Positions 2,074 to 17,002 of a stretch of DNA of 17,195 nucleotides are shown in pieces. The stretch is taken from the sequence record MK054204.1; one strand, written 5' to 3'. The position numbers were made by a program, and so were the translations under genes. The notes beneath the pieces were generated by a model. That model saw nothing but the letters and a program-made list of their open reading frames with translations, searched no databases and had not been told where the DNA came from. The stretch's first letter is position 1. Every line of letters starts with the position of its first letter.

Positions 2074-2079
2074 CTCAGT

Positions 2080-2919
2080 TCACCCCTTTGTACTATTTGC
2101 CGGGATAGTGAATGAAGGACTGGTAGTTGTAGTAGGCGGTGGCGTAATAGTATGCGTTACTGTGCTATTTGTCACATGTTGAGCAAGTAAGTGACTCAGG
2201 TTAGCGTTTGCAATCCCAAAGCCTATCGCAACTCCAATCCCGATACCCATGATAACGCCTATAATAAGCATAGTATAATCGATACCACTGCCTACCCGTG
2301 CAAGTGCTTCAAAGAACTTAGTACGGATAATACTGTGGATCACCTGTGGTGCGTTAAGCGTCTTAAGCGTTAATTGTTTAATCTTCTCATCTACTACCAA
2401 ATCTAAAGTATAAGGATAATCAGGCAAAACGAAATGAACGGCCACAAACTTTTTCCCAAACGGGAATTTGTTCTTTTCAAGTAGCAAAGGTTCACCGTTT
2501 AAGACCCAACTCTTTCTTAGTTTGCGGTTCTCTAGCATTAGATAACCCTGGTTTTCCACCAGTTTCGCTTTCCTCATAAACAACAATTGCAAGCCGTCCT
2601 TTGATTGTTGTAACATTGCTACGTAATGTTCCGCAGTGAACAGACGCGAATTAATCCATTTTTTAACTATTCTTACTCTGATATCCGCCTTATCCTTCTT
2701 CTTTACCTTCTTTCTTTGGGCTAATTCCGCTTTCAATTGTTTGTATTGTTGTAGCATTAATTCAGTTTGCCTTTTCTCATAAACTTTGTATAATCTCTTT
2801 AGCGTTTTGCCATCCGCTATCTGCTTTTGTACTTCTTCATATTTTTGCTTTAGCTCATCAAGTGTCTGAGCTTTCTTAAGCTCTTCCTCCCATGCGGAAA
2901 CTAATTTTCCATCAGACAT
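2080..2919 (-). CDS. Fusellovirus core membrane protein, SSV1 B277 homolog
   Basis: MSDGKLVSAWEEEL start, coiled coil, C-terminal TM helix and Thr/Pro-rich tail; synteny. Confidence 0.88.
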   Translation of the reverse strand: MSDGKLVSAWEEELKKAQTLDELKQKYEEVQKQIADGKTLKRLYKVYEKRQTELMLQQYKQLKAELAQRKKVKKKDKADIRVRIVKKWINSRLFTAEHYVAMLQQSKDGLQLLFMRKAKLVENQGYLMLENRKLRKSWVLNGEPLLLEKNKFPFGKKFVAVHFVLPDYPYTLDLVVDEKIKQLTLKTLNAPQVIHSIIRTKFFEALARVGSGIDYTMLIIGVIMGIGIGVAIGFGIANANLSHLLAQHVTNSTVTHTITPPPTTTTSPSFTIPANSTKG

Positions 2920-3190
2920 ACAGACACCTCAACCCCAAATAGAACGTAAAAGCATCAACCCCCAACCCTAGTAGGTATTCCCAAAGATTCAAGTATACAC
3001 TCAAGTGTGCTACGAATAGAACCAAGACCGCGGAAACGGTGAGATAGTACCCTATTAGTCTTATGAATTTGCGGTCTAAGGTTTGTCTCTCTTTCAACCC
3101 TTTTGGCTTTCTGAATAGCAAAGCAGTAATGAGCATAATTGAATCGAAACCTAGGGCTATTTCGGCGTATTTTGCCGGTATAAGTATCAT
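2912..3190 (-). CDS. Small membrane protein, SSV1 A92 homolog
   Basis: 92 aa, three hydrophobic segments, GAGGTGGGGGAG upstream of ATG; overlaps the B277 start. Confidence 0.75.
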   Translation of the reverse strand: MILIPAKYAEIALGFDSIMLITALLFRKPKGLKERQTLDRKFIRLIGYYLTVSAVLVLFVAHLSVYLNLWEYLLGLGVDAFTFYLGLRCLYV

Positions 3191-3206
3191 CGCTCCCCCA
3201 CCTCAT
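2955..3206 (-). CDS. Basic protein, SSV1 C84-like, overlapping A92 out of frame
   Basis: ATG at 3206 overlaps the A82 stop (ATGA); 83 aa starting MRWGSDD; length and position match C84. Confidence 0.5.
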   Translation of the reverse strand: MRWGSDDTYTGKIRRNSPRFRFNYAHYCFAIQKAKRVERETNLRPQIHKTNRVLSHRFRGLGSIRSTLECILESLGIPTRVGG

Positions 3207-3454
3207 ATCCTCTCTTCCCTCACCCAATTGAAGAAGAACCCTAAGTTCACTAACCCCAGTAAGAGCGGGAATATCGCTAAATAGAAAGTAGACCCTGAGA
3301 ACGCTATATCAGTATACCCTTGGACAAAGACTAAGAACCCTATGACGCCTAAGAACGTCCCCATTAAATTTACAAGATAGTTCCTACTTATCAAACCCAC
3401 GGCCGGGAAAAGAATAGAGACTACGTAGATTACATCCCCTAACGCACTCATCAA
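3203..3454 (-). CDS. Small membrane protein, SSV1 A82 homolog
   Basis: MSALGDVIY...NWVREERI; three TM segments; first gene after a TTTATAAA promoter. Confidence 0.88.
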   Translation of the reverse strand: MMSALGDVIYVVSILFPAVGLISRNYLVNLMGTFLGVIGFLVFVQGYTDIAFSGSTFYLAIFPLLLGLVNLGFFFNWVREERI

Positions 3455-3477
3455 AANAGGAAAAAATTNATNNTGAC

Positions 3478-3491
3478 TTTATAAAGGGCCT
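3478..3491 (-). promoter_or_regulatory. T9-like promoter (TATA box TTTATAAA) for the A82-B251 operon
   Basis: AGGCCCTTTATAAA about 24 nt upstream of the A82 ATG. Confidence 0.8.
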
Positions 3492-3756
3492 ATTCAGACT
3501 TGTATATCCTATACGCTACAACCGCCGGTACANTTATCAGTACAAGTATATAGAACAGTGGGACTAGTTGTAAGATGGGTGCGTTTGAGCTTCCTACGTA
3601 TTGCGGGTTAGGATTAGTTTGCGTCACAGTACCTGAAACAGTTGTGAAAGATGGTGTGGTTAGTAGAGTGACATAACTAACAATTGGCGATAATAACGCT
3701 ATACCTAAAACGATGAAGATAGCCAAAAAAATTATTTGCTTTAAACTGATTTCCAT
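3490..3756 (-). CDS. vp3: Minor capsid protein VP3
   Basis: Two hydrophobic helices; C-terminus [25 protein letters not shown] paralogous to VP1; directly downstream of VP1. Confidence 0.92.
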
Positions 3757-3850
3757 CCCTCACACCTTTACTCTTTGTAAATCTTGTACGCCACTACGGC
3801 GGGGACTATGATTAAGACTAGGATATAGAACAGTGGGACTAGTTGTAAGA
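3548..3850. repeat. Perfect 28-bp direct repeat shared by vp3 (3548-3575) and vp1 (3823-3850)
   Basis: ATATAGAACAGTGGGACTAGTTGTAAGA present twice, 275 bp apart. Confidence 0.95.
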
Positions 3851-4031
3851 GTGTGGCGTTTGTGCCGGTTACGCTAGGTGCAGTACCTGACGTTAAGCTA
3901 TTTACTTGGCTAACGATGACGGGCAATAGTACTATGCCTATAAGTATAAAGATGAATAAACCTAGAATGGCACCTATGTTAGTTGCTTCNCCCTTTCTTA
4001 GCTTTGGTCTTTGCAATAGTACTAGGCTCAT
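3768..4031 (-). CDS. vp1: Major capsid protein VP1 precursor (short leader; predicted mature N-terminus EATNIG)
   Basis: [32 protein letters not shown] (the X is a GGN codon = Gly); NAT glycosylation sequon; in-frame stop at 4038-4040 fixes the ATG at 4031. Confidence 0.94.
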
Positions 4032-4323
4032 ACTTGGTCAATAGGGGCTTATCGCTAAGCTTTTTAAACCCCTCCAGTTCTGAATTCAGAATCTGAATTT
4101 GTTTAGAGTTCTCTTTAATTTTAGCATATAACGTNCNNCCTTCNTTGTANANCTCTATGTAGCCTTNNTCNTTNANNATNCNNANNTGNCTTAGCACNGT
4201 NGCATAGCTCAAAAGCAGTGNGTGAGAGATGAGAGAAGCAGAGAGTACGTAGTTTTCCACAATAAGCTCTAAGATTTTACGCCTTAGTATCTTAGCCCTA
4301 ATCTCATTAGCGTTATAAGTCAT
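3979..4323 (-). CDS. Winged-helix (ArsR-like) protein, SSV1 B115 homolog
   Basis: [34 protein letters not shown]; ATG at 4323 overlaps the C166 stop (ATGA); many Ns inside. Confidence 0.85.
4061..4075 (-). promoter_or_regulatory. T1/T2-like capsid promoter embedded in the B115 gene
   Basis: GGAGGGGTTTAAAAA about 30 nt upstream of the vp1 ATG; resembles the SSV1 vp1 promoter. Confidence 0.75.
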
Positions 4324-4820
4324 GGCCCACCCCTTATCANTTTCACCACTTCCCAAATGAGGATGAAATTAACAATCAAAACGAAAGCCGTNANNAANGG
4401 CCCTACNNNCGGTACATTCGCTAACAATCCTATAGAAGAAGTGAATATAGATATTAGATACCCTAGCACACTATCGGTTGTCTGAAACATCCACGTTAGC
4501 CAACCTATCAGGTAAAGGATTGGGGCCAACCAACTAAAGCTAATACTGAAGAGCGTTACACCCGGTATCGTTACACCCGGCAAAGTTAGTCCCGGAAAGT
4601 TAGCCCCTAGGATACTGAACGGCGGTATAAGTGTCACGGGCCCCCATAACGTAATGGGTGGCCACCCCACAGTCCATACAATTGATGACGCTAAAGCTTG
4701 GTCAAAACTATATGAAGGTATCGGTGGAATTGACGGTGGCGTTATACCGCCGTAAGCACCTACCATTAACGCTAGAAAGACGTCAAACAATAGGACGTAT
4801 ACTATTAGCTTAGTCCCCAT
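4320..4820 (-). CDS. Membrane protein, SSV1 C166 homolog
   Basis: Start MGTKLIVYVLLFDVF at 4820 after GGTGGTAGGG gives 166 aa; Pro-rich, multiple hydrophobic segments. Confidence 0.88.
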   Translation of the reverse strand: MGTKLIVYVLLFDVFLALMVGAYGGITPPSIPPIPSYSFDQALASSIVWTVGWPPITLWGPVTLIPPFSILGANFPGLTLPGVTIPGVTLFSISFSWLAPILYLIGWLTWMFQTTDSVLGYLISIFTSSIGLLANVPXVGXXXTAFVLIVNFILIWEVVKXIRGGP

Positions 4821-5052
4821 CCCTACCACCTCCTAAGATTAACCCGGCTATCAGACCCAAAATGATCGCAACGCCCCAAAAAAGCGGTAAGAAATTCATG
4901 AAAGTTAGGGTGAAAGTTGAGGCTATACCTACAAGAATCGCCGGTACTTTGCCCGCCATCTTGTATGTTAGTCCCATCATTCCTATGATAATAACGACCG
5001 CAATNACCGGCCCTAAACCNGTNNNTAANGCNANNNNNATTGCGTCCGTCAT
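4810..5052 (-). CDS. Small membrane protein, SSV1 B78 homolog
   Basis: 80 aa, three hydrophobic segments; lies between VP4 and C166. Confidence 0.82.
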   Translation of the reverse strand: MTDAXXXXLXXGLGPXIAVVIIIGMMGLTYKMAGKVPAILVGIASTFTLTFMNFLPLFWGVAIILGLIAGLILGGGRDGD

Positions 5053-7433
5053 TATTCCTCCCTCCCCATAAACCTATCNACNANNGTNTTNGCTAANAGT
5101 ANCGCTATNCCNANNANNAAGANNTANAAGATGTACCANGGTANTANCCCNANNTATGCAGTGGCGATTAGCCCCATAACCGCACCACCCGATGCACCCG
5201 CACTACCGCCGAATTTCCAACCTAGTAACGCGATAAGTACCGTAACCACAATCCCGATGATTTCCGCCCATGGTTGGTATTGAGAGAAATTGTAAAGTGA
5301 GGAGTTAGGCAATATGTTATTACTAAACGGCTTAGTGTAGTTGTAGTTAAGAGTAGTGGTATTCACTGTGGTGGTGCTGCTTACTGTAGTAGTATTTGAA
5401 ACGCTAATGTTTAGTATCTGATATGTAACGCCGTACCAGTCTATATCTACTAACTCATAAGGACTATAGGATAGTTTTAGCGTTACGCTTCCGAAACCGG
5501 AAGCGTTTGTGTAGCCCGTTACATATTGTGTCAATGTTGATGGGTTAGTCCCGATCAATATTATATATGCTTGGTTAGCCGTAGCACTTTGTAAAACGAT
5601 ACCGCTAACGAAGAACCAATTCAGTACAAGTTTCCCCGCACCGTAGTAGAAGCCTAATCCAATAACCGGCGAAGTGTTTGATATAGTTAATACACCACCC
5701 GCACTACTGCTTATCTGAACATAGTTACCCGTTATAATCTGAAACGTTAGCGTATTAACGCTATTATTAACGAATTTTAACCCGGTTAAGGAACTATTAA
5801 ACGGAATTAGATAGTTGTTCCCGTTTTGAGTGATTATTACTAGGCCGTCATTTGCGGACAACCAATACGCTTTGAACTGAACTATAGCGTTTGTAGTTAC
5901 CATTTTAGCATAAGCAAAAGCCAAAATAGTAGATGTTTGCGTAAACGCAGATTGAGTTACGTTAGCTACGGGGCTATTATAAGTGAATTGAAACGTTATC
6001 GTTATTGTTTGCCCTAATATCCCGATTTTAGGATAAGAAGTAACGAATAACACGGGGTAACTCTGTGCGGGCAATACTGTGAAACTACCGCTATAATCTA
6101 TCATTGATATTGGGCCTTCAGTTACGATTACTGTATAGTAATAAGTAGTAGGTACTTGGACTATAGGCGTAAAACTATAGGGTATCGGGTACGTAACACC
6201 GTTTATTGATACGTTAGCCCGCTCTGATACTGCCGTATAATAACCTAGATTTGAGGGATAACCTATAATGTTAGTTAAAGTGAAACTGATTGTTTGCCCG
6301 CTTAGATAAGTCCCGCTAGGCAAATTGACGCTAGGATATAGTGCATAGCCCTCAACAATTACGGGTATAGTTAGGTTGTAGTTTATCGTTACTTGAGATG
6401 TAACGATTTGAAGCCCTATGGTTACGTTTACGTACCATGTTGGTGGGTTACCTTCGATTGGCCCCGTGTAAAGTAAATATAATCCGTTTGACTTCCCTAA
6501 AATGTTAAAAGTGCATGCTAAGCCTTGTTGTATACCCGTTATTGTAAAGTTTTTCTGTGAAACTATGCCCGATATGCTATATAATGCACCTGAAATGTTT
6601 ACGGGATTCCCCGCACCCGCATAGGCCATTAAGAAATGATAGATGTTATACGATAATGCGAAATAACTAATAGTCAGTTGTGCCGTAACTTGTGTAAAAT
6701 ATTGATAACGCATTATCACCCACTGACCGTACCCAAAACCCGGCCCAATATTCTGAGCGTCAATAACATAATTACTATTTACGGTATTCAACGATAGGCC
6801 CGGTATTATTGAAAAAGTCTTTAGAGTACCGTTATAGTAATAAACGTAAAGTTGGTTTGAAGCGGGTAAGTACCAGAACCCTAAACCTATTTGTTGCCCA
6901 ACACTGATTGAGCCCACAGACACGTTTAACTCTTTCACACCGTCAAAGTATACAAATAACCTATACGTTGGGAAACTCCCTTTTTCCATATAAACCACAA
7001 TCCCATCGGAAGCGTAAGGTAATGCGGGTGCATAGCTACCCGTAAAGCCTGAAGGGAAATTTACACCGTAGCCTATGGCGATTGAACCGTAGGATCCGGT
7101 GTTGCTAGATGAAGCTAGCAACCATGTGACGTTTAGAGCGATTTGTGATGATGAAAGAGAAAGAGATACGTTATTACTAATATATGCTTGATTCGGCAAA
7201 ACTTGGAGGTAGTAAGTGTTGTATATCGAAACGTAAGTTGGGTTAAGCCAAGGTGCATTAGAGAGCGTTGAACCGTTAAGAGTTTTACTTACTGAACCCC
7301 CATTTACCGTTATAGTTTGAGTATAAACTCCCACACCGCTATTATTAGGCCCTCCTCCACCTATAAGTAAAGCTAAGGAGTTGAGAGAAAAAAGAGATAT
7401 AAAGAAAATAGCGAATAATAGTCCCCACTTCAT
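5052..7433 (-). CDS. vp4: Adsorption/tail protein VP4, SSV1 C792 homolog
   Basis: 793 aa; signal peptide; Asn/Ser/Thr/Tyr-rich beta-type body with many N-x-S/T sequons; C-terminal TM segments; first gene of the structural operon. Confidence 0.92.
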
Positions 7434-7456
7434 TAAGCGATAAAAAATTATGTGAG

Positions 7457-7470
7457 TTTATAAAGGGCCT
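7457..7470 (-). promoter_or_regulatory. T7/T8-like promoter for the vp4 operon
   Basis: AGGCCCTTTATAAA about 24 nt upstream of the vp4 ATG (leaderless). Confidence 0.8.
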
Positions 7471-7688
7471 TAGTCTATCAAACGCCATAGTAAGTCTATT
7501 ACTGCCTTACGAAATTTGGGGCTTAAGTACATTGCAATCCCTAAAGAGGCTAAAAAAATTGCTAAGGCAATTTCCGGAGCGTATTGAACATACCATGGAG
7601 GTGGCGAATAAGGTGGCGAATAAGGAAAAATAATTTTCCCCTGAACAGATGCATTTACTGGGCCGAAATTAATACCCGAGGATGACAT
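7470..7688 (-). CDS. Small membrane-anchored protein, C124-like (PPWY motif plus TM plus basic tail); candidate immunity protein
   Basis: 72 aa, PPPWYVQYAPEIALAIFLASLGIAMYL then KFRK; own BRE/TATA 23 nt upstream of the ATG. Confidence 0.65.
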   Translation of the reverse strand: MSSSGINFGPVNASVQGKIIFPYSPPYSPPPWYVQYAPEIALAIFLASLGIAMYLSPKFRKAVIDLLWRLID

Positions 7689-7693
7689 ATAAG

Positions 7694-7700
7694 AAAAAAA
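7694..7700 (-). terminator. Oligo-T (T7) terminator of the 302-aa gene transcript
   Basis: T7 tract 27 nt downstream of the stop. Confidence 0.55.
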
Positions 7701-7710
7701 GATTAACTTG

Positions 7711-7725
7711 ATAATATACTTTTTC
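7711..7725 (-). promoter_or_regulatory. Tx-like promoter for the 72-aa membrane protein
   Basis: GAAAAAG-TATATTAT about 23 nt upstream of ATG 7688. Confidence 0.55.
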
Positions 7726-7726
7726 G

Positions 7727-8635
7727 TTAGACAATATACACTAGAATTAATGGTGTTTCTGTGTAACTAAGTTGTAAGGTTCCCGATATTTGAGCACTAC
7801 TACTTGACGTGTAGGCATTCGCGGAAAATGAAGGGCTACTGGACAACCAAGCAAAAGCCCATGCATAATTACTACTAATATAATTATTTGCGATAGGATA
7901 GTTTGTAGCGTATTTTATAGTTTCATACCCTACTGCAGTAGCGGGACTTCCAATTATGTTAAATGATATTCCGCTAAAGGTTTCGTTAGGAATTGGGTAG
8001 AACAAAATTGATTTGTTCACTCCGCTCTGGTAATAACCGGGTGCCTCACCCATCACTAGAGCAGAATATGGAGTAAAACTGATTCCGGTATTATAGGTAT
8101 ATGAAAAACTTCCATCTGAGAATTGTGCAACTACATTACCGTTAGAAAGGTAAAGATATATGTTCATAGTTGTACCCGCGAACTGGCTATACGGATATTG
8201 ATATGATACCAATGGATGAGCGTTGTTATTTACCACCAGATACACAAAAAGTAGCACGTATTTCACACTTTGATTTTCCAATAAATCAACTCCCGCTTGC
8301 AAGAAAGTTGTGCTTGCCCCATTACCAATAGTATACGGTGAAAGAGCCACCCAAAAGGCATACATGTTATCATACCAGTATTCATTAGGATTATAATAAT
8401 ATGGTATTGAAGATGGGATTGGCACAGAGATTGAGGCATATGAAGCCGGTTGCACTTGACCGTTATTAGCAAACTCAAACACATACCCTAAAAGGTTTGA
8501 ATCAGTTGATGATGAAATTTGATTTATCGGTATCGGTGATGATGGCGGTATTATTACTCCTGCAATTGTTGGAGTTATTAAAAGCGATAGTAACGCTAGG
8601 GATAGGGTTAGAAGGGCTAGAAGGGACTTTCTCAT
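7727..8635 (-). CDS. Secreted protein at the SSV1 A291 position; putative G1 (eqolisin-like) glutamic peptidase, toxin candidate
   Basis: Signal peptide MRKSLLALLTLSLALLSLLITPTIA; motifs SNLLGYV, AFWVAL, FLQAGVD, ALVMGEAP; no C-terminal anchor seen. Confidence 0.7.
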   Translation of the reverse strand: MRKSLLALLTLSLALLSLLITPTIAGVIIPPSSPIPINQISSSTDSNLLGYVFEFANNGQVQPASYASISVPIPSSIPYYYNPNEYWYDNMYAFWVALSPYTIGNGASTTFLQAGVDLLENQSVKYVLLFVYLVVNNNAHPLVSYQYPYSQFAGTTMNIYLYLSNGNVVAQFSDGSFSYTYNTGISFTPYSALVMGEAPGYYQSGVNKSILFYPIPNETFSGISFNIIGSPATAVGYETIKYATNYPIANNYISSNYAWAFAWLSSSPSFSANAYTSSSSAQISGTLQLSYTETPLILVYIV

Positions 8636-8658
8636 TTGGAATAGAGGAAAAATAGAAC

Positions 8659-8672
8659 TTTACAAAGGGCCT
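8659..8672 (-). promoter_or_regulatory. T3-like promoter for the 302-aa secreted protein
   Basis: AGGCCCTTTGTAAA about 24 nt upstream of ATG 8635. Confidence 0.65.
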
Positions 8673-9048
8673 AACTAACGCAGATATTATGTTTTTTGCA
8701 AACATGGTCTAGGGTTGAATCAGTGTTTCTAAACTCCTTTTTGCATATGGGACAAGTCTTTGCATGCTCGGTGTATCGGATGTGTTGTTTCAGACTAACT
8801 GATGAAGAAAATGGCATTAAGCAAAGGGGACAGACGTAAGGCGATACTGCTTTACTTGTCAGTAACTTATAGAGATAACCGCTTTCATCTAACAACTGGG
8901 GGTTATGGATTAACGCTTTAACAATAGCCCTAATTATTCTTTTCTGTTCCGGCGTCAGACTGTGGTATCGTTCCAGTTCTTCTAAAGTCACGTGAATCGT
9001 AATCCCCTTATGGTTACTCCTCAGGTGCGTTTTACTGCCTGACTCCAT
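8671..9048 (-). CDS. Tandem C2H2 zinc-finger protein, SSV1 B129 homolog
   Basis: CPLC..HIRYTEH and CPIC..HVCKKH; ATG at 9048 after GGAGGG. Confidence 0.9.
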   Translation of the reverse strand: MESGSKTHLRSNHKGITIHVTLEELERYHSLTPEQKRIIRAIVKALIHNPQLLDESGYLYKLLTSKAVSPYVCPLCLMPFSSSVSLKQHIRYTEHAKTCPICKKEFRNTDSTLDHVCKKHNICVS

Positions 9049-9650
9049 TCCTATCCCTCCAACAGTAGTTGTAAAACGCACACTCTAGGCATTCACTATC
9101 AGGCTTAACTTTTTTCGGCGGTAAGATGTTTTCCTCAACTGAAATCCCGAAAGCGTTAGCCCTAGCCTCTAAGTCAGTCTCTGAATAATCACGTTTAATC
9201 TCTTCCACCCTACCATCCGCATACACGATTATTAAATACCCCGCCATAGCATTAGCCATTTCAATGTAATAGTTAAGTTGTCTGAGGTAGTTGTTGAGCC
9301 TAACGTTATCCAGTGATTGCTGATGCGTATACTTCAACTCGTAAACCGTTTGCTCTTCTTTGTCGTAAACGTCCACTTTGCCTACTATTTGAAACCCTAA
9401 AGCCGTCTTCCGTTCAACCCTCTTTTCAACCTCAAAGCCATGCTTTNCTAAGTATTGATTGCAAACGCATATGAAGACCTGAACCTATGTGCATCCTCAT
9501 TGTAGTTTGTAAATTCTGTTTTATTTTACCGTTATGTCTCATTAGAAAACTTTGTCGAAGGCATCTACTAAGCTCAGTAACCCAGATCGTCTTAGTATCG
9601 TTAGTAGTTATCATTTCATAATTATATAATATATCAATGAGTCTNCTCAT
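9032..9650 (-). CDS. cas4: Cas4-like (RecB-family, Fe-S) nuclease; apparent frameshift at N 9447 is probably artefactual
   Basis: Track ORFs 9432-9650 and 9032-9376 join on removing the N at 9447 (205 aa). Motifs RC, GSGLH, GKVD, YELK, QLNYY and CLECAFYNYC all present. Confidence 0.85.
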
Positions 9651-9946
9651 NNTTTNCTCGCCCTCTTATGCCTCCTAATCGTCAAAGTATTCCAACAAAC
9701 TACAAACGCCTCTATCACACTATCATAATAAATCATCGATGTGGGGGCAAAGTGCAATACTAAAATTGTTATAAGAAGTAACGTAGCTAAAGAAAATTTA
9801 TAGAACGCTAATCGCAAAGGCGTTTCAATGAATTTCCTNGCAATTGCATTAACCTCTCTCACTCCCTCAATTCTAAGCCCTAATACCGTTGTAAAATAAT
9901 CGTTAAAGTGCATACCATAGAATGCTAATAATTCCGCTATCATCAT
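9647..9946 (-). CDS. Membrane protein, SSV1 C102-like
   Basis: FNDYFTTVLGL...E.NA...LRLAFYKF pattern; ATGA overlaps at both ends. Confidence 0.78.
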   Translation of the reverse strand: MMIAELLAFYGMHFNDYFTTVLGLRIEGVREVNAIXRKFIETPLRLAFYKFSLATLLLITILVLHFAPTSMIYYDSVIEAFVVCWNTLTIRRHKRAXKX

Positions 9947-10074
9947 TCTCTCACCCTGAAGTANANATAGAAATATTCTAGCGTAAACTTGCTCTGCATA
10001 TGCCCACTAAGCAAATGCTCAACCACTTCCCTTCTTTTCCTAAATATACCGCCACAACGTAGACACTGATACAT
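9943..10074 (-). CDS. C2H2 zinc-finger protein, SSV1 A45 homolog (43 aa; not in the ORF track)
   Basis: Hand translation MYQCLRCGGIFRKRREVVEHLLSGHMQSKFTLEYFYxYFRVRE; TAATG and ATGA coupling to its neighbours. Confidence 0.88.
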   Translation of the reverse strand: MYQCLRCGGIFRKRREVVEHLLSGHMQSKFTLEYFYXYFRVRE

Positions 10075-10316
10075 TATTGACCCACCTCTAATTTACGTTT
10101 AATTGCCAACCTAACGCTCTTAGGTAACTTGTAAGTAGTAAATAGATAGCAATATACGAGATGATCGATATCGTACTTACTGTAAAAGTGTTGATTAAGC
10201 CTTATGTATGTATTATTGCAAACTGGACATTTATTTAGCACATGATTCCTTCGCGTATGTTGTTTCAATGCGAATAATCTAATCGTTGTGAAACCACAAA
10301 TAGGGCATCTAAACAT
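10074..10316 (-). CDS. C2H2 zinc-finger protein, SSV1 A79 homolog
   Basis: CPICG..LKQHTRRNH, CPVC..HFYSKYDIDH. Confidence 0.9.
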   Translation of the reverse strand: MFRCPICGFTTIRLFALKQHTRRNHVLNKCPVCNNTYIRLNQHFYSKYDIDHLVYCYLFTTYKLPKSVRLAIKRKLEVGQ

Positions 10317-10551
10317 TTTCCAAGTACCTCACTAATGCTTCTCTGATGAGCTCAGATTTTGTAATTTTTCTCTTGGACGCAATCATCTCTAGTTTCGCGT
10401 TCAACTCAGGCGGTAGTTTAAATGATATTACTTGCATTGTATCATATAACGTTAATTCTATTGTGCCATCATTCATCTTCACTTCGATCTTTCTATAAGT
10501 TTTTGCATAGGAGGGTCTCGGCAACTTGATATATTCAACCCTAGCCTTCAT
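10309..10551 (-). CDS. Ribbon-helix-helix regulator, SSV1 C80 homolog
   Basis: MKARVEYIKLPR start after GGTGA gives 80 aa; C-terminal VISFKLPPELNAKLE...KSELIREAL RHH signature. Confidence 0.9.
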   Translation of the reverse strand: MKARVEYIKLPRPSYAKTYRKIEVKMNDGTIELTLYDTMQVISFKLPPELNAKLEMIASKRKITKSELIREALVRYLENV

Positions 10552-10552
10552 C

Positions 10553-10714
10553 TCAATCACCACACTCACAATATTCAATTGCATGCTCTATAGTTTCTTT
10601 CAATTCCTCTAATGATTCAATTAGCTCTTTATCGCAAGGTGCGTTGCTTAATAGATCATCTAATTGTTGTTTAATATATGCTAACTGTTCTAAGTAAAAT
10701 TCAATATCAGTCAT
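10553..10714 (-). CDS. Hypothetical acidic coiled-coil protein (53 aa; not in the ORF track)
   Basis: MTDIEFYLEQLAYIKQQLDDLLSNAPCDKELIESLEELKETIEHAIEYCECGD; GAGGTGG/GAGG ribosome-binding site; fills the gap between A100 and C80. Confidence 0.75.
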   Translation of the reverse strand: MTDIEFYLEQLAYIKQQLDDLLSNAPCDKELIESLEELKETIEHAIEYCECGD

Positions 10715-10727
10715 TCCTCAAACCACC

Positions 10728-11048
10728 TCAGTGATATATGTTCCACAATAATTTCGCTATCTTTTTCAATATCTCTTCTCTCACACCTTCTATTACTTTT
10801 TCATTACTGCTAGTTCTATAAATTTCGTAAAGTTTGTAGATTTTGATTAGCAGATTTTTGACTCTTTCAAACTCCGGGTCTGTCTCTTCATAATTAATTT
10901 TGTTTTCTAGTTGAGTCTCGCCTTCTTGTGCGTTTATCTTTACGTATAGTTTATTGTACGGGGTTTTATCTTCAACCCTTACGGATTGGATAAAAAAATT
11001 GAATTGAAGTTCATCTTGGAGGATTTCCTTGTTTTGAACCTCCACCAT
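10728..11048 (-). CDS. SSV1 A100-like protein
   Basis: C-terminal KLYEIY...EEILKKIAKLL pattern; first gene of the T6-like operon. Confidence 0.65.
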   Translation of the reverse strand: MVEVQNKEILQDELQFNFFIQSVRVEDKTPYNKLYVKINAQEGETQLENKINYEETDPEFERVKNLLIKIYKLYEIYRTSSNEKVIEGVREEILKKIAKLLWNIYH

Positions 11049-11057
11049 TTTGGGGAA

Positions 11058-11120
11058 CCTCTATGTACGATATACATAGAGCAAATATTTAAACTTTATG
11101 CTATATAGCTATCGTACATA
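11058..11120 (-). promoter_or_regulatory. T6-like early promoter with operator-like inverted repeat
   Basis: AAAG-TTTAAATA box flanked by the 11-bp IR TATGTACGATA (11062-11072)/TATCGTACATA (11110-11120). Confidence 0.8.
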
Positions 11121-11163
11121 CAAGAACAATTTCTTATAAATTCGCATAAATGCTATATGCATA

Positions 11164-11493
11164 ATGAACATAGAGGAATACATGAAAACCGAGTTAACAA
11201 ACAAACTCATTTCAACTCCAATGAAACTATTACTTATAATCGGACTTCTTTACGAAGAAACGCGAGAATGGCCCGGAGTCTCAGAGATTTATACCCAAAT
11301 AAATAGAAACACCTATGTGTGGTATAATTGGCAAGATTTTTTCCTCCAACAAGAGTTGATAGAAATTAAGGAAACAAAATCTGCCGTCGGCTCAACAAAA
11401 AAGGTCGTAATACTGACGGAGAAAGGAAGAAAAATTTACGAACTATTAAAGGACTGTATGGACAGAATGGCATTAATTGAGAACGAGAAGTAA
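11164..11493 (+). CDS. Winged-helix (MarR/PadR-like) transcription regulator
   Basis: GVSEIY helix, wing ending VILTEKGRKIYELL; TTATAAAT box about 23 nt upstream (leaderless); divergent from the T6-like promoter. Confidence 0.75.
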   Translation: MNIEEYMKTELTNKLISTPMKLLLIIGLLYEETREWPGVSEIYTQINRNTYVWYNWQDFFLQQELIEIKETKSAVGSTKKVVILTEKGRKIYELLKDCMDRMALIENEK

Positions 11494-11506
11494 CGGGGTT
11501 TTGTTT

Positions 11507-11523
11507 AAAAAAGAAAAAAGAAA
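11507..11523 (-). terminator. Double T6 tract, likely terminator of minus-strand transcription
   Basis: TTTCTTTTTTCTTTTTT on the minus strand, just before the end of the convergent wHTH gene. Confidence 0.5.
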
Positions 11524-11803
11524 TATCTTTTTGGTAGGGAGGGGGGTAGGGGAGAACGGCGGGGCGTCAATTGTATAACACAGTACTTCTAACCCTACCC
11601 CTCTCAAGTACTTTATGTAAATGTTTCTTAATCACTGGCACCTTTGTTACATCTAATTCGTCTTCTGTTAGTTGTTTTTGATTCACTACACAGAATCTAT
11701 ATTATAATACTTAAAAAAGGATATGGTAGATAATAACAAGTATTACCCCATCTTTATCTTGAAAAGTTAAACAGAAGCAAAATCGGTATTATTATATAAA
11801 GTT

Positions 11804-12178
11804 TTATTTCTTTATATTACTGGTGTGATACCCAATTCCGAAGGGAATAAAGTCTCTTAGTCTGAATCTATTAATGTTGAACACCATCCTATCCTCTAGA
11901 TAACATTGAGCCAACTTAAGACACTGATGCACCTCCTCCAACACCTTTCTTGCTTTTTCATCCAAGATCATTATATCTGAATAAGGTATATGAACATGAT
12001 AACGGCCCTTACGAGGATTATAGACGGCGTAAAGCATCCAGTCAGTCCTATCCCTAAAAATCACCACAGACCCAACCGGGGTTATTGCCACCCAATTCAA
12101 GTTATCCCAATTGATATGTTTCGAAATACTAAAGCCGTGAGTCCTAATTATAAGCATTAACTGTTCTTGATTCTCCAC
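11804..12178 (-). CDS. Hypothetical protein, last gene of the replication-like operon
   Basis: GTG start after GGGTGAGGGG; overlaps the end of the 681-aa gene. Confidence 0.65.
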   Translation of the reverse strand: MENQEQLMLIIRTHGFSISKHINWDNLNWVAITPVGSVVIFRDRTDWMLYAVYNPRKGRYHVHIPYSDIMILDEKARKVLEEVHQCLKLAQCYLEDRMVFNINRFRLRDFIPFGIGYHTSNIKK

Positions 12179-14202
12179 TTCCCCTCACCCGCCTCCTCTA
12201 TTATATCCAGTTTTTTCAGGATATCCCTCCATAACTCTTGACTCCTAGGGTCTGTAGCTTGAACAGTATACTCTAATATCTTGCTTAACTCATCGTCAAT
12301 AATGATATCTTTACCCAATAGCTTCGATCTCACATAGTTTATCAACATTTCATCTATATCGTAGCTTGAATGGATTTCCTGATTCTCATCTATCTCCTCC
12401 TCCAATTCCGCGAGGACTTTCAACCCGTAATGTGATAAAGCCCATGAGAACTTCTTACCATCATAAGCTTTCCATAATAACCCCTTATCGTAAAGAGCAT
12501 CCAAGAGCTTTTTAGTTTCTTGTGTACTCATTTTGATAATTTGGGCAACCTCTGATGTTGTCACGTCCTTAGTTTCCTCATCTTTCTCTCCTTGTATAAA
12601 TCCGTGATCAAGCAACCATCTCAATAACTGCAAATCCCTTTCCGACAACTCCAGTGTTGTCAATATAATATCCTTCTTGAAATAACGCATCACAAAATTC
12701 ACATCTTCCTCTTTTACCTCTTCATGCCCGTACATAGACGCGGTAGCTCTGACTAAATTCCTTGTAATCTCCGTTGCACGATAGATGTTCTTAAAGTTGA
12801 TAAACTTCTTGAGGAGTTCGATAACCTTTAAACCTATAGAGTCCGTAAATACCGGGTCGTTGGGCCTCGTTTTTAACCAGACATATGCGATAAGCTTCAG
12901 TCTAGAAAACTTTTCATCGTCTATACTCTTCCTCATCAAGATTGTACTAATAATTTTTTCCTTGATACTCTCATCTTCTACCGGTGAAAGGTAGAGTTGG
13001 ATTGAACGATTAGTGATTTGATGGTCAACATTTGCGGTCACGTTAGTCGTGATAAAAGTTGGTTGTCCCGGGATCACTTTTTGTATTGTCTTTATTTCCC
13101 CGGTTTCAGTCTTTACCGGGACTAGCGTTGTTATTCTACCCTCACTCATTGCTTCCCTTAAATAGCTTACCCCTTCAACATTATCCAATTGTTCGATGAA
13201 CAATACCTTACCGTCTAATGTGCCGATATCGAGATACCCTAGACTCTCTTTTGTTATTCTTGTAACATTAAGAACAACCCAATCATCCACTCCATCATTC
13301 ATCTCATAAAACATCTTTAAAATAGATTTGATCGTTGAGGACTTACCTACACCGGAACTACCCGTTAAGATTAAGTGAACACGGTATATCCCGAAGAGCT
13401 TCTTTAACTGTGAGGAAATTACGCTCAGTAGCACCGCAACCTTAAGCTTCTCATTCCCTACGACTTCGGAAGCTCTCGAGAGGAAGAAGCCTAAGGGATC
13501 ACGGTTTATCTCCTCCCACTCTTCATACCTTTTCACCACCTCACGTACGTCTGTCCATTGTATATATTTTTCTGGTTCTATTCGTTCTAACCATACATCG
13601 AGAGCATCGCTAATTAGTTGCTTAGAGATATGTCTTTGGCCTCTGAACGTGTAAAGCTTCTCTACAATCTCTTTCTTATTCCTAATATAGTATATTGTTT
13701 TGCCCTCAACCTTATAGAAGTCCACAGTAGTCAATAGACTCAAAGTTTCATTCTTCTTTTTGGCCACAAGTTCAAATTGAGGAAGTTGAGGTAACTTGAG
13801 GTCTATAATTCTAGTACTGTCCTCAATTGTTCCAGCGAAACCATAGTATATTTCAAATTTTGTTTTGTTCTTACCCTTGATTATTATCATATTATCTTTA
13901 ATTTCAATATTTTCATCTTCAATTTCTTTCTCCTCTTCTGCTAAAAATTCTCCGGAAGTATTTGGAGAGATAGAGGAATTTGTGTCGTTTGTGTCGCTTT
14001 TGAATTTTTCTCGTGTGTCGCTTACTAAATTGGGCGACACAAACGACACATTTTCATTATACCCTTTCTGAACTTCCGGAGAATTTTTATCAAACGACAC
14101 TTCATTTTTTGAATTATTTTGTGTCGCTGAGTTATTATTTCCGTCTTTATTTTTCTTTAATTTTTCTTGGACAATCCTCCTAAGCGTTTCCCTATCAACC
14201 AT
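12157..14202 (-). CDS. MCM-like AAA+ ATPase with C-terminal winged helix (putative replicative helicase/initiator)
   Basis: Walker A GSSGVGKS; Walker B variant VLFIEQLD; LREAMSEGRITT; sensor-1 FITTN; NRS arginine finger; C-terminal TTSEVAQ...LYDKGLL wHTH. Confidence 0.75.
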   Translation of the reverse strand: MVDRETLRRIVQEKLKKNKDGNNNSATQNNSKNEVSFDKNSPEVQKGYNENVSFVSPNLVSDTREKFKSDTNDTNSSISPNTSGEFLAEEEKEIEDENIEIKDNMIIIKGKNKTKFEIYYGFAGTIEDSTRIIDLKLPQLPQFELVAKKKNETLSLLTTVDFYKVEGKTIYYIRNKKEIVEKLYTFRGQRHISKQLISDALDVWLERIEPEKYIQWTDVREVVKRYEEWEEINRDPLGFFLSRASEVVGNEKLKVAVLLSVISSQLKKLFGIYRVHLILTGSSGVGKSSTIKSILKMFYEMNDGVDDWVVLNVTRITKESLGYLDIGTLDGKVLFIEQLDNVEGVSYLREAMSEGRITTLVPVKTETGEIKTIQKVIPGQPTFITTNVTANVDHQITNRSIQLYLSPVEDESIKEKIISTILMRKSIDDEKFSRLKLIAYVWLKTRPNDPVFTDSIGLKVIELLKKFINFKNIYRATEITRNLVRATASMYGHEEVKEEDVNFVMRYFKKDIILTTLELSERDLQLLRWLLDHGFIQGEKDEETKDVTTSEVAQIIKMSTQETKKLLDALYDKGLLWKAYDGKKFSWALSHYGLKVLAELEEEIDENQEIHSSYDIDEMLINYVRSKLLGKDIIIDDELSKILEYTVQATDPRSQELWRDILKKLDIIEEAGEGKWRIKNS
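13942..14127. repeat. Nested inverted repeats plus GTGTCG iteron cluster (candidate replication origin)
   Basis: 18-bp IR at 13942-13959/14072-14089 and 17-bp IR at 13981-13997/14034-14050 share centre 14015.5; seven GTGTCG/CGACAC copies. Confidence 0.85.
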
Positions 14203-15909
14203 TTAGGCCACCTCTAAACCCATCAACCTCTTCACGTTAGCATAACCGAACCTCTTATCAATCAAGTAAATTGTTGCATTGTCTTGCGGACCACGGATAG
14301 CCCTCCCTATCGCTTGTTTAACCTTAATTATAGCCTTCTCATATAATACAGTCCATTTGAAACTATTAGGATCTTTGTTCACCCTTTTCACAACTACTTC
14401 AATCATCTTGTCCAAGTAAGGGTCTTTGTACTCCGGCAGAGGTAGACCAACAACGAATATTGCCTTAATCCTACTCCTTCCTTGATCGTCTAAAACTTCA
14501 ATTCCTTCACTTAATTTCCCACCCGCAACTGCGAAAATTATTGAACCGTTAGGCAACTTTTTTACCCTATCAAGCACATCCGGTCTAACATCTTCGAAAA
14601 ACGAATCCATAAACAGATATCTATAAGCCTCTAACTCCTCGTAACTCGGTAAAATAACTAAGTTTAACCCGTCTTTTGAAGTATATTGCCTAATAATCTG
14701 AGCGACTTTTTGCCTATACTCTTTCCTTTTCACTTTGATATACTCCACATTATCCTCAAGGTAGATTTTCGCCCCATTAAAGTGGTTACTTAGAGACGTG
14801 GAGTTCCATAGGTTTAGAGCGTTGATGTACTCAAAGTTGTTGAGACCCCATACGGTTTTGATATAATCCTTTGAGGGCATCGTACCGCTCAAAAGAATAT
14901 ACCTATAATTATTTAGTTGAGATAGCCACAACGAGGGGTCTGCGGGCATCGTTTTAATATATTCTCCATTCTGTGTATCCCTTTCAATATAATAATCATC
15001 TTTTTTTGCCCACGCTTTATTTACTGCTTTGAACTTTGCTTGTAGTTCCTCATCTAAATACCCGGTATAGGAAAAACCGTTATCCGGATCCTTCACAAAT
15101 TCCCTGAATTCCTTAACTACTTTCTCCTTTACTCTCTCAGGATCCAAACCCTCAATAATGACTTTACTAAAGTACCTCTCTATCTCTTTCACCGTAAGCG
15201 TTATACTATTAATATTAAAGTCGTCAAGGTTATGTGCCTCATCAAAAATTATTATATCAAAAAGATCCTCATCCGGTTTCCTAATACCTAAGAAGAAATA
15301 GATGTAACTATATATCCTAATATCCGCCGTATTACCATCGATTAGGTCTCTAGCACATATACTATATTTCCTTCCATCTACATTGATTTCATTGTCCCTG
15401 AACCAGTTAGCGGTACCTTTTATCCCTACTTGTTTTAACATAGCGTTAAGCGTGTTTGTCACTGTAATCGTAAGTCTCCCTACTTCTTCTTCCATTTCAC
15501 GAAGTCTGTATCTACAGAAAGTTAAACTATCAGGGTCATAACATTTAGGGTTGAGATACTTCCTTTCTATAAACTTTTTATGCATTGTTACATGTTCTAT
15601 ATCGTCGACTTCTTTTGCACATTTTGTGCACCATAAAACGTACGGCTTCTTCATGACCTTGCAATATTCTCCTTTCCTCATAAGCCCGCCGAAGCTCATA
15701 CCCAACTTGTTTGCGTCCCTTTCCCAACTACTATATTGGCTTATGGTTCTGACATAAACGTAACCTTGCTTCTCCAGACGTCGCAACGTCTCCAACGCTA
15801 TAATTGTTTTGCCGGTTCCCGTTGGAGCATTAATAACTACACTGCGACCGTTGCTTAGAGCTTCTACGGCTTTCTTTATAATAACTTCTTGATAATCCCT
15901 AAGTATCAT
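14203..15909 (-). CDS. XPD/Rad3/DinG-family SF2 helicase
   Basis: Q motif LRDYQ; Walker A APTGTGKT; Cys-rich insert; DEAH; LLSGT; LSEGIE; VGLP; motif VI KQAIGRAIRG. Confidence 0.92.
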   Translation of the reverse strand: MILRDYQEVIIKKAVEALSNGRSVVINAPTGTGKTIIALETLRRLEKQGYVYVRTISQYSSWERDANKLGMSFGGLMRKGEYCKVMKKPYVLWCTKCAKEVDDIEHVTMHKKFIERKYLNPKCYDPDSLTFCRYRLREMEEEVGRLTITVTNTLNAMLKQVGIKGTANWFRDNEINVDGRKYSICARDLIDGNTADIRIYSYIYFFLGIRKPDEDLFDIIIFDEAHNLDDFNINSITLTVKEIERYFSKVIIEGLDPERVKEKVVKEFREFVKDPDNGFSYTGYLDEELQAKFKAVNKAWAKKDDYYIERDTQNGEYIKTMPADPSLWLSQLNNYRYILLSGTMPSKDYIKTVWGLNNFEYINALNLWNSTSLSNHFNGAKIYLEDNVEYIKVKRKEYRQKVAQIIRQYTSKDGLNLVILPSYEELEAYRYLFMDSFFEDVRPDVLDRVKKLPNGSIIFAVAGGKLSEGIEVLDDQGRSRIKAIFVVGLPLPEYKDPYLDKMIEVVVKRVNKDPNSFKWTVLYEKAIIKVKQAIGRAIRGPQDNATIYLIDKRFGYANVKRLMGLEVA

Positions 15910-16111
15910 GTTCCACCACCAGTGTGGCTTCTAGGGAAAAACTAATCTCGTATACCTTTGTGCCCGTAAAGATCAACAGTTTACCGTTGTCCCAACACAC
16001 CATTTTCGCTTTAACCTTATCGCCGTTCTCCAACCAAACTTCCTTGTCCTTTTCACACTCCCCGTTAAGCTCATTCACATATTTCCCATCCCTTATTTTT
16101 ATTACTGTCAT
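15899..16111 (-). CDS. Small beta-rich hypothetical protein (70 aa)
   Basis: ATG at 16111 after GAGGTGA; overlaps the helicase start. Confidence 0.7.
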   Translation of the reverse strand: MTVIKIRDGKYVNELNGECEKDKEVWLENGDKVKAKMVCWDNGKLLIFTGTKVYEISFSLEATLVVEHDT

Positions 16112-16126
16112 GAGAAAAATCACCTC

Positions 16127-16133
16127 AAAAAAA
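16127..16133 (-). terminator. Oligo-T (T7) tract directly after the stop of the 167-aa ORF
   Basis: TAA-TTTTTTT on the minus strand; Sulfolobales terminate at oligo-T tracts. Confidence 0.5.
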
Positions 16134-16637
16134 TTATGAAGATTTGTAAAGTTTCCTTACCAACGCCCCGCCGTTGCTTCCAATAACATACTCCAGCTTT
16201 ATGATATCGCCCTCCTTAATCTTACCCGCATTAACGTTTTTCCTTATAAATTCATAGCTCCCGGGAGATAGTCTGATTATCACACCATCGTTACCCCTTT
16301 CCTCCATTATCTTTGCCAATTCATCGGCACTGTAGACTTTGGGGATTAGATCCTTGCCTATTACCCTACCCGTCTTCGGGTCTTTTTTAGGAACCTCTTC
16401 CTTGTTAACAACATCGGAGAACATCCCTTCAAGCGGAATTGCTACCATTTCGTAACGTATTGTCTTAAACTGTTTTCCGTCCTTGGTTGTTCCCGTTATT
16501 TCCCTAGGTTCCAACAAACTCTTGAATTGTACTATGGCTTCACCGTAAGAGCCGTCCTCTGACGTTGGTGCTAACTTCACGACCAGAGTAGGTTGCCTTT
16601 CATCTATCTCTTGGAAATTAAACTTCATCTCTTTCAT
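16134..16637 (-). CDS. Hypothetical protein, possible OB-fold ssDNA-binding protein
   Basis: 167 aa, beta-rich, C-terminal GKIKEGDIIKLEY; ATGA-coupled to the RHH gene. The function is inference only. Confidence 0.6.
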   Translation of the reverse strand: MKEMKFNFQEIDERQPTLVVKLAPTSEDGSYGEAIVQFKSLLEPREITGTTKDGKQFKTIRYEMVAIPLEGMFSDVVNKEEVPKKDPKTGRVIGKDLIPKVYSADELAKIMEERGNDGVIIRLSPGSYEFIRKNVNAGKIKEGDIIKLEYVIGSNGGALVRKLYKSS

Positions 16638-16828
16638 GCCTTAGCACCTCCTACTGCTTTCGCCACTTCGGCTTTCTCTTTTGAAATATACCCCCTTGCG
16701 AGGGCTTGTTTGATCAAAAAAATAATTACTTCTTGTCTTGATTCCCACCCCTCAGATTTCCATAATTGATCGAATGTTTGAAGGATGGGTTTTTCCACCT
16801 TTACGGTTATTATGATTGTCTGTTCCAT
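16634..16828 (-). CDS. Ribbon-helix-helix (CopG-like) regulator
   Basis: ATG at 16828 after GAGGAG; IIITVKVEKPILQTFDQLWKSEGWESRQEVIIFLIKQAL fits the RHH pattern. Confidence 0.8.
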   Translation of the reverse strand: MEQTIIITVKVEKPILQTFDQLWKSEGWESRQEVIIFLIKQALARGYISKEKAEVAKAVGGAKA

Positions 16829-16832
16829 TTCT

Positions 16833-16900
16833 CCTCTATGTACGATATACACAATACAAGTATATAAACTTTATGCTATATGTATGACGTACATATAGCA
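16833..16900 (-). promoter_or_regulatory. Early promoter of the replication-like operon, paralog of the T6-like promoter
   Basis: AAAG-TTTATATA box flanked by TATGTACG (16837-16844)/CGTACATA (16888-16895). Confidence 0.8.
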
Positions 16901-16950
16901 CATTTTGCCGTCTTCTTTCAATTCGTCGCAAATCACGGCAAAAATTAACG

Positions 16951-16984
16951 GGTTGCCAATGCTTATAAACATGTTTTGGCAACC
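16951..16984 (+). promoter_or_regulatory. Putative int promoter flanked by a 9-bp inverted repeat
   Basis: TTATAAAC at 16963-16970 between GGTTGCCAA (16951-16959) and TTGGCAACC (16976-16984); TTG start at 17003. Confidence 0.6.
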
Positions 16985-17002
16985 ATAATACAGTGAGAGG
17001 TT

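Follow-up and report, generated by a model that had tools for sequence, protein, structure and literature searches.

The window analyzed here, i.e., the whole stretch of DNA of 17,195 nucleotides (nt), matched record MK054204.1 at 100% identity and represents the complete circular genome (17,195 bp) of SSV12, a Sulfolobus spindle-shaped virus (SSV) and alphafusellovirus from the Mutnovsky volcano, Kamchatka. The record was opened within the attP/int region, and all of its genes were deposited as 'hypothetical protein'. Six coupled open reading frames (ORFs), named g1 to g6, occupy the minus strand from 16828 to 11804, and the fifth of them, g5, encodes an MCM-like AAA+ protein and carries a palindrome of short repeats within its own coding sequence. 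The int gene lies on the plus strand, from about 17000 through the record origin to 842, and is divergent from the operon at a distance of about 170 nt. An original prediction, made from the sequence alone, had described six tightly coupled genes on one strand, divergent from int; ORF coordinates, junctions and the tracing of int agreed with that description, and the predicted g4/g5 boundary (14203/14202) was found to be exact. The features of the locus are as follows:

16828-16634, minus strand: g1, 64 amino acids (aa)
16637-16134, minus strand: g2, 167 aa, with its ATG overlapping the g1 stop (ATGA)
16111-15899, minus strand: g3, 70 aa, preceded by a 22-nt spacer with GAGGTGA
15909-14203, minus strand: g4, 568 aa, with an 11-nt overlap with g3
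14202-12157, minus strand: g5, 681 aa; the g4/g5 junction is TAAATG (end of the g4 stop at 14203, start of the g5 ATG at 14202)
12157-11804, minus strand: g6, 117 aa; the g5/g6 junction is TAATG, with a 1-nt overlap
13934-14097: nested imperfect palindrome of GTGTCG iterons, in g5 codons 36-90, 105-268 nt into the ORF; candidate origin or initiator-binding site
16829-16999: divergent control region separating int (plus strand) from the operon (minus strand), with a TATA box

The operon as such is already known. What is added here is the conserved iteron palindrome inside g5 and its retention in genomes that lack the predicted initiator.

The Iteron Palindrome Inside g5

The palindrome consists of an outer (13934-13959/14072-14097) and an inner (13976-13997/14034-14055) pair of arms, which are the top two inverted repeats of the genome, with scores of 18 and 17, respectively, against a maximum of 15 in 100 shuffled sequences. 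Its iterons are arranged in inverted orientation with a spacing of 9 nt, and an extra GTGTCG iteron is present at 14118-14128. The heptamer CGACACA occurs in six copies in the palindrome region and in none in the other 16.8 kb. Folded as single-stranded DNA (ssDNA), the palindrome reached −44.8 kcal/mol (z = −9.1), and the flanking tracts (13840-13939 and 14080-14159) contain 75–80% A+T. The features of iteron-origin architecture, namely helical-turn-like spacing, inverted groups, a single site and A+T-rich flanks, are all present in SSV12. The encoded residues, 36-90, fall in a disordered linker of g5.

The position of the element was found to be conserved. In 52 of the 69 loci, the top-scoring inverted repeat of the whole locus falls within the first 450 nt of the g5-homologue ORF, at 130-310 nt from its start; after dereplication, it was found in the 5′ part of the g5 homologue in 38 of 52 loci, compared with 5.6 expected (P < 5e-6), and most of the remaining loci nonetheless present inverted iteron clusters at the same place. 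The iterons vary by lineage (GTGTCG, GTTACG, GYACCA, GTGCCA, CCCCGGA, AATCGTCAAC and others) within a constant architecture; between SSV12 and locus L026, iteron positions are identical and iteron sequences different. The segment 13942-14127, previously suggested as a cis element, is thereby strongly supported as a conserved feature. When the domains of g5 were compared with the iteron class, residues 99-175 presented the highest same-class excess (0.78 vs 0.65), every domain being in excess through relatedness. No earlier description of the intragenic palindrome was found in the literature searched, which did not include the original pSSVi and Redder 2009 papers.

The long operon-bearing SSV of record MK054215 (L101) presents a 51-nt deletion at the equivalent of ~14052-14102, by which the left outer arm AAAATTCTCCGGAAGT and one iteron were lost and the inner palindrome was kept. 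Since the left outer arm is deleted there, the outer arms are not strictly required in that genome.

The MCM-like AAA+ Protein

The domains assigned to g5 are the following:

N terminus: N-terminal helix
residues ~15-96: disordered linker
residues 99-245: beta-rich domain
residues ~246-430: AAA+ core
residues 431-515: lid
residues ~516 to the C terminus: winged-helix domains

Searched alone, g5 scored 20.6 bits against the Pfam MCM family (PF00493; cutoff of 23.3), with only residues 243-298 covered, and eight of the 84 members of its family matched PF00493 at E < 0.01. A single-sequence search of the PDB returned P-loop noise only, and a profile of the close family gave winged-helix matches and a weak match to ChlI. 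With a profile of the wide family (110 members), MCMs were the best ATPase matches (E = 1.6e-7). The comparison of the 84 family members with six plasmid-encoded MCMs by hhalign gave a probability of 97.9% (E = 4.2e-13) over 333 columns and residues 218-581, spanning the N-C linker, Walker A and B, the EAM(S/E)xG helix-2 region, the Arg finger, sensor 2 and the C-terminal winged helix. The controls, an Orc1/Cdc6-like ATPase (8.5%) and the DnaA-like ATPase of SSV12 (6.7%), were both confined to the P-loop. Residues K287 (Walker A), R399 (Arg finger) and R475 (sensor 2) are conserved family-wide. The Walker B pair is E337-Q338 (~13194-13189) instead of the D-E of MCMs; Q338 is invariant in the 41 close relatives, and Glu occupies that position in 72 of the 110 wider family members. 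This natural E-to-Q exchange suggests slow or regulated ATP hydrolysis, and g5 may therefore turn over ATP slowly.

No MCM N-terminal OB/Zn domain was detected in g5, the hhalign alignment beginning only at residue 218, and residues 99-245, a domain devoid of cysteines, had no match in a PDB profile search. The AlphaFold model was good at 99-245 and in the C-terminal winged-helix region, with disorder at 15-96 and a predicted local distance difference test (pLDDT) score below 50 in the ATPase core; its top Foldseek matches were Mcm4, Mcm5 and Mcm7, with a template modeling (TM) score of 0.19. By these comparisons, g5 is MCM-like at the level of the AAA+ clade, divergent and not a canonical MCM, so that the MCM-like ATPase originally proposed holds for the AAA+ core and not for a bona fide MCM, given the sub-cutoff Pfam score, the undetected OB/Zn domain and the E-Q Walker B. 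It is the predicted initiator of the module and possibly also a helicase.

The g5 family comprises 657 representatives at E ≤ 0.001, and in many homologues a recent addition to Pfam, PF27228 ('MTBMA_p00010_2nd'), is found. No named ATPase family emerged when distant relatives were scanned with Pfam. Distant members are fused to a DUF3854 domain, which we take to be Toprim-like. A related helicase domain fused to prim-pol domains has been reported (PMC4158269); the label 'Superfamily I helicase' given to it there was not retained, as the present comparisons place the domain with MCM-like AAA+ proteins. Matches of g5 in PADLOC were marginal (mad8, E = 5.8e-4; a CARF model, E = 0.008). The homologue of locus L045 (Ga0208313_100610, 1543-4323) reaches 926 aa through a much longer N-terminal extension, and 12 copies of a TGGCACA iteron were counted in its analyzed 5′ region, with further copies elsewhere in the locus.

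The XPD/Rad3 Helicase and the Small Proteins

The helicase gene g4 was matched in the PDB to SaXPD (3crv, E = 3.6e-30) and StXPD (2vl7, E = 5.5e-21), and to Pfam Helicase_C_2 (PF13307) with 84.1 bits, above the cutoff of 25.3. Its superfamily 2 (SF2) motifs align with those of both proteins, and the sequences APTGTGKT, FDEAHNL, LLSGT, GGKLSEGIE and QAIGRAIRGP (motifs I, II, III, V and VI, respectively) are invariant in seven homologues, as are cysteines 83, 94, 97, 123, 132 and 185. Of these, C83 pairs with Cys 88 of SaXPD, and C94 and C97 pair with the CxxC of StXPD. The alignments indicate that g4 is an intact SF2 helicase of the XPD/Rad3 family with a four-cysteine Fe-S domain, in which a cluster is predicted, and the earlier XPD call is borne out. 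The region of the Arch domain (residues ~193-277) aligned weakly to SaXPD (11.6 bits), and the rad3 model TIGR00604 gave 95.7 bits, below its cutoff of 246.95. The PADLOC model for the DinG protein associated with type IV-A CRISPR systems spans the full length of g4 (E = 1.7e-53) and outscores the TIGR rad3 model.

Of the small proteins, g1 was matched to phrog_4738, 'transcriptional repressor' (E = 1.8e-9), and to the NCBIfam N-terminal ribbon-helix-helix (RHH) region of NikR (E = 7.8e-6); its best PDB matches were NikR RHH domains, at a weak E value of 0.11, and no Pfam family was found at E < 0.1. These matches identify g1 as an RHH DNA-binding protein, as had been suggested, and as the probable regulator of the module.

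The status of g2 as a possible single-stranded DNA-binding protein (SSB) is less firm. The protein belongs to phrog_21681 (E = 8e-68), which has no assigned function, and all of its sequence homologues are at least 62% identical and lie within the same module; sequence searches for SSB similarity gave no match. Its AlphaFold model is beta-rich (pLDDT of 90). Foldseek found nothing in the PDB at E ≤ 0.001, with a best match at E = 0.02; Rim1, gene V protein and LEF-3 recurred weakly (E = 0.1–0.4), and a few weak matches in BFVD were named SSB, DUF669 or LEF-3 (E = 0.065–0.32). Overall, the matches to SSB-type folds ranged from 0.065 to 0.4 in E value and from 0.2 to 0.44 in TM score. The SSB call thus keeps weak fold matches to ssDNA binders, none of them significant, and is unproven; g2 may be an OB-like ssDNA binder.

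The protein g3 matched phrog_31784 (E = 1e-36), with no match in Pfam, NCBIfam or PADLOC, and was detected only in SSV12, SSV7 and ASV1 (loci L012 and L015 by tblastn), the other XPD-bearing loci leaving no room for it. Similarly, g6 matched phrog_24251 (E = 1.9e-55) and nothing in Pfam, NCBIfam, PADLOC or a PDB profile search.

Distribution and Probable Dispensability of the Module

Gene neighborhoods were compared across 80 metagenomic and six viral loci. The close, fuselloviral group always has g2, g5 and g6, with g1 upstream wherever the contig extends far enough and g6 directly downstream of g5 in every close locus with downstream sequence available. XPD (g4) is present in about half of the close loci and absent from about ten otherwise syntenic ones, where g2 abuts g5; the core g1-g2-g5-g6 is conserved with or without it. 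Gene content thus marks g4 and g3 as optional members, and the two helicase-type motors emphasized at the outset, back to back in SSV12, are not an obligatory pair. The neighborhoods and the SSVs devoid of the operon confirm the exchangeable nature of the module and its presence in only some fuselloviruses.

Genes similar to g5 were found in 34 virus records, and in three divergent groups of viruses an XPD-like gene adjoins a g5-like one. Of the fuselloviral module, the pSSVi-like group has g5 alone: pSSVi (5.7 kb) and a pSSVi-like element integrated in S. islandicus L.D.8.5 contain no large gene except the integrase and the g5 homologue. A megablast search against plasmids gave no match, and pSSVi was found by tblastn. 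Its episomes replicate, according to the passage of PMC8371274 that cites Ren et al. 2013. The same operon is annotated in the records of SSV7 and ASV1 (Rad3-like helicase and 'unknown'), and a more distant pair in that of SSVK1. The Rad3-like helicase operons of SSV7 and ASV1 were reportedly described by Redder et al. in 2009. Makarova et al. 2014 related C674 of ASV1 to a prim-pol family, namely to its helicase domain, and suggested that C674 takes part in initiating the replication of viral DNA (PMC4158269).

Seven short SSV proviruses from Mutnovsky (11.3–11.9 kb) are devoid of the operon. Two deletions, equivalent to 9555-13907 and 14362-16896 of the window, left a piece of 444–454 bp, equivalent to 13908/13918-14361, with the palindrome, the 5′ end of g5 and the 3′ end of the XPD gene. 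The retained piece was located in the following loci:

MK054209 (L098): 1676-2347
MK054216 (L102): 1283-1954
L099 and L100: further short-SSV loci with the retained piece

At the protein level, four of the short proviruses are 100% identical to SSV12 over g5 residues 1-88, and the aligned copy of M.12.04 is identical to SSV12 in DNA over the palindrome and the 5′-terminal part of g5, while the XPD remnant beside the retained palindrome is clearly more divergent. In M.03.0.27, the inner iterons are GTTACG on both arms, i.e., they switched in concert; M.16.12 is a left/right hybrid with unmatched inner arms, and both M.12.04 and M.04.0.29 have the element twice in tandem, once as the GTGTCG and once as the GTTACG type. 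This pattern of retention fits a protein-recognized cis element under selection, and the short SSVs amount to natural deletion derivatives, akin to a mapping experiment.

A variant of SSV9 deleted for bases 2823-9693 still forms clearing zones (Pauly et al. 2019, PMC6452263). The deleted interval includes int, the Rad3-like B494, the MCM-like A460 and the intergenic repeat cluster. The module is accessory, given the infectivity of this variant and the short SSVs without the operon, and the same two observations rule out the module as an essential replication apparatus.

Promoter, Annotation and Flanking Features

A TATA box, TTTATATA, precedes the operon at 16868-16861, some 36 nt before the g1 ATG. 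Over about 70 nt, the operon promoter (16834-16900) and that of a minus-strand gene cluster at 10728-11048 (11059-11125) have a sequence identity of about 80%, and the 14-mer TATCGTACATAGAG is present exactly in both (16834-16847 and 11059-11072), which suggests a site for a common regulator. The paired promoters are reminiscent of the T5/T6 early promoters of SSV1. A third copy of TATCGTACATAGAG, with two mismatches, precedes the plus-strand winged helix-turn-helix (wHTH) gene at 11164, and the promoter copies at 11062-11120 form a palindrome with 29-nt arms.

The deposited annotation of the two helicase-type genes is corrected here. The deposited start of g4 (15654) loses Walker A, and that of g5 was placed at 14040; the longer starts at 15909 and 14202, respectively, are supported by the conservation of the N termini in homologues. 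Five small plus-strand ORFs deposited inside operon genes (14013-14183, 15626-15757, 15736-15858, 16611-16769 and 16785-16898) are probably spurious.

Positions 1-45 of the window contain a tRNA-like 3′ fragment (GGGTTCAAATCCCGGCGGGTCCG, complementary strand) corresponding to the attP core within int; no complete tRNA or Rfam family was found in the window. The 5′ region of int includes two N bases (17144 and 17146), and its start near 17000 is apparently non-ATG. Between g6 and a convergent wHTH gene (11494-11803), an ORF of 39 aa is annotated at 11567-11686 with a TATA-like sequence of its own, and ~11500-11565 holds a C-rich run followed by T tracts.

Interpretation of the Module

No fusellovirus replication origin has been functionally characterized (PMC6080066). 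With a probability of about 0.6, the operon is an accessory, horizontally exchangeable replicon of the pSSVi type, with an MCM-like initiator whose origin, which it would bind, melt and unwind, is nested in its own gene. The other components would be g1 as RHH regulator, g2 and g6 as small partners of g5, and XPD as a second helicase that is optional. According to this proposal, g5 would recognize the inverted, lineage-specific iteron clusters in the 5′ part of its gene and an oligomer would assemble there in an ATP-dependent manner, perhaps as two head-to-head rings like SV40 large T or papillomavirus E1. It would melt the A+T-rich flanks and then unwind the DNA or pass it to another helicase, either XPD where present or the host MCM, with synthesis by host primase and polymerase. 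An early-type promoter, the near-duplicate of a second promoter of the genome, would drive the module. The route would be additional and non-essential, since related viruses are viable without the module. The replication role first put forward is therefore retained for an accessory replicon and given up for the essential apparatus of the virus, the SSV9 variant and the short SSVs having come close to showing the operon to be dispensable.

Several points weigh against this interpretation. The viability of the SSV9 variant and of the short SSVs implies a further origin and initiator, which must come from the core genome or the host, and in the short SSVs, which have no g5, the palindrome persists without a cis-encoded initiator. 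The fold evidence for g5 is weak (TM score of 0.19), as the model of the ATPase core is of low confidence, and the Gln found instead of the catalytic Glu in each of the 41 close relatives speaks against g5 being a fast motor. None of the module genes encodes a primase or a polymerase. The palindrome could be an operator instead of an origin.

An extension of the same idea is more tentative. The palindrome might be the origin of a replicon common to fuselloviruses, pSSVi-type plasmids and integrated elements, with specificity classes set by the iterons. In that case, the short SSVs from Mutnovsky would have lost the initiator and retained only the origin, as one or two cassettes (GTGTCG/GTTACG), and would be replicable in trans by co-resident long SSVs. 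If so, they would represent a satellite-like strategy inside one virus population.

Among the alternatives, g5 might instead be an ATP-dependent regulator of transcription or copy number, with the palindrome as its operator for autorepression by an intragenic roadblock and g1 as co-regulator, the operon controlling the carrier state or lysogeny. Several public sources label homologues as MarR/TrmB-type, the C-terminal half of g5 has winged-helix domains, its Walker B has the E-Q pair of switch ATPases deficient in hydrolysis, SSV9 can do without the module and the palindrome lies inside a transcribed gene. A regulator is nevertheless unlikely: the similarity to MCMs extends over the entire AAA+ core, with two features typical of ring ATPases that act on DNA, the Arg finger and sensor 2, and A+T-flanked iteron clusters are typical of origins. 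In addition, pSSVi needs a replication protein, for which the g5 homologue is the only large candidate. The fusions of distant members point the same way, both that to DUF3854, which we assume to be Toprim-like, and that to prim-pol domains described in PMC4158269.

A module devoted mainly to DNA repair, recombination or conflict between elements, in which the XPD/DinG-type and AAA+ proteins would have damaged or foreign DNA as their substrate or shield the genome of the virus, appears improbable. XPD is a family of repair helicases in cells, g4 matched the type IV DinG model over its full length, the module is accessory, and the pairing of XPD-like with g5-like genes recurs in three divergent virus groups. 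On the other hand, about half of the close modules and all pSSVi-like elements do without XPD, yet g5 and the palindrome persist; no cas or other defense genes were found in the window, PADLOC gave besides g4 only the two marginal g5 matches, and the iteron palindrome is left unexplained. It is just as improbable that the palindrome, with no role as a protein-bound origin, is an RNA hairpin early in the g5 mRNA limiting translation, or a recombination hotspot behind module shuffling, since its stability (z = −9.1), its location 105-268 nt into the ORF and the deletion and duplication end-points of the short SSVs adjoining it are set against tandem, 9-nt-spaced iterons switching in concert on both arms, which is the signature of a protein recognition site, against the long SSV that kept its inner iterons without the left outer arm, and against M.16.12, whose unmatched inner arms indicate that hairpin pairing is not strictly maintained.

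The accessory-replicon interpretation offers a testable pair for fusellovirus replication, namely a protein of the MCM-like AAA+ type and an iteron palindrome with precise limits, and the two occur together in viruses, in integrated elements and in a satellite plasmid. If correct, the interpretation would give Sulfolobales genetics a small autonomous replicon, account for the exchange of modules between plasmids and viruses and reveal initiator-less viral genomes that depend on their relatives.

Comparison with Known Systems

Palindromic multi-site origins are recognized by SV40 large T antigen and papillomavirus E1, and the origin of phage lambda lies inside the O gene. The SSV12 element shares with the former the short repeats in inverted clusters and the A+T-rich flanks, a comparison drawn from established knowledge, and with the latter the location of the site in the gene of its own initiator. 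Unlike g5, the SF3 proteins T and E1 and lambda O are not MCM-like AAA+ proteins, and the origin role in SSV12 is a prediction.

With archaeal and eukaryotic MCMs, which are its best ATPase matches in the PDB, g5 shares an AAA+ core that aligns from the N-C linker to the winged helix; it differs in its Pfam score below the gathering threshold, the lack of a detected OB/Zn domain or Zn-finger cysteines, the E-Q Walker B and the long disordered N-terminal linker encoded by the palindrome. With the archaeal SaXPD and StXPD, g4 has in common all SF2 motifs, the four Fe-S cysteines and the C-terminal helicase domain, whereas it is virus-encoded, scores below the cutoff of the rad3 model and aligns poorly in the Arch-domain region.

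The closest relatives are the operons of SSV7 (C72-B204-C74-A583-B471/B192-A136) and ASV1 (A58a-A171-B80-C559-C674-B119), which agree with SSV12 in gene order and content, in the site beside and divergent from int and in the position of the intragenic palindrome. Protein identities to SSV12 are 65–87% for SSV7 (tblastn), and g5 of ASV1 is 71% identical. The inner iterons differ, being GTGTCG in SSV12, GTTACG in SSV7 and GYACCA in ASV1. The SSV7 record (FJ870916; L012/L002) has g5 as two ORFs, B471 and B192, over both of which SSV12 g5 was aligned by tblastn without a break; the gene is thus interrupted in frame in that record, either through a sequencing error or through a genuine truncation.

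The pair of SSVK1 (B494/A460) is only about 27% identical, has no N-terminal extension and presents an intergenic repeat cluster. In its record (AY423772; L104), dense long inverted repeats with arms of up to 84 nt and ACTTACAACAATTAATTAGGAGA units occupy 5306-5668, about 700 nt downstream of the MCM-like gene A460 and inside the interval deleted in the viable SSV9 variant.

The satellite plasmid pSSVi (NC_013777) has no detectable homologues of g1, g2, g4 or g6 and possesses a copy-control gene of its own (ORF56/CopG-type). Its ORF735 is the g5 homologue, 38.6% identical over residues 224-598 (E = 3e-60), and the strongest palindrome of the plasmid (482-600), with iterons of the CCCCGGA type, lies 138-256 nt into ORF735, as in SSV12.

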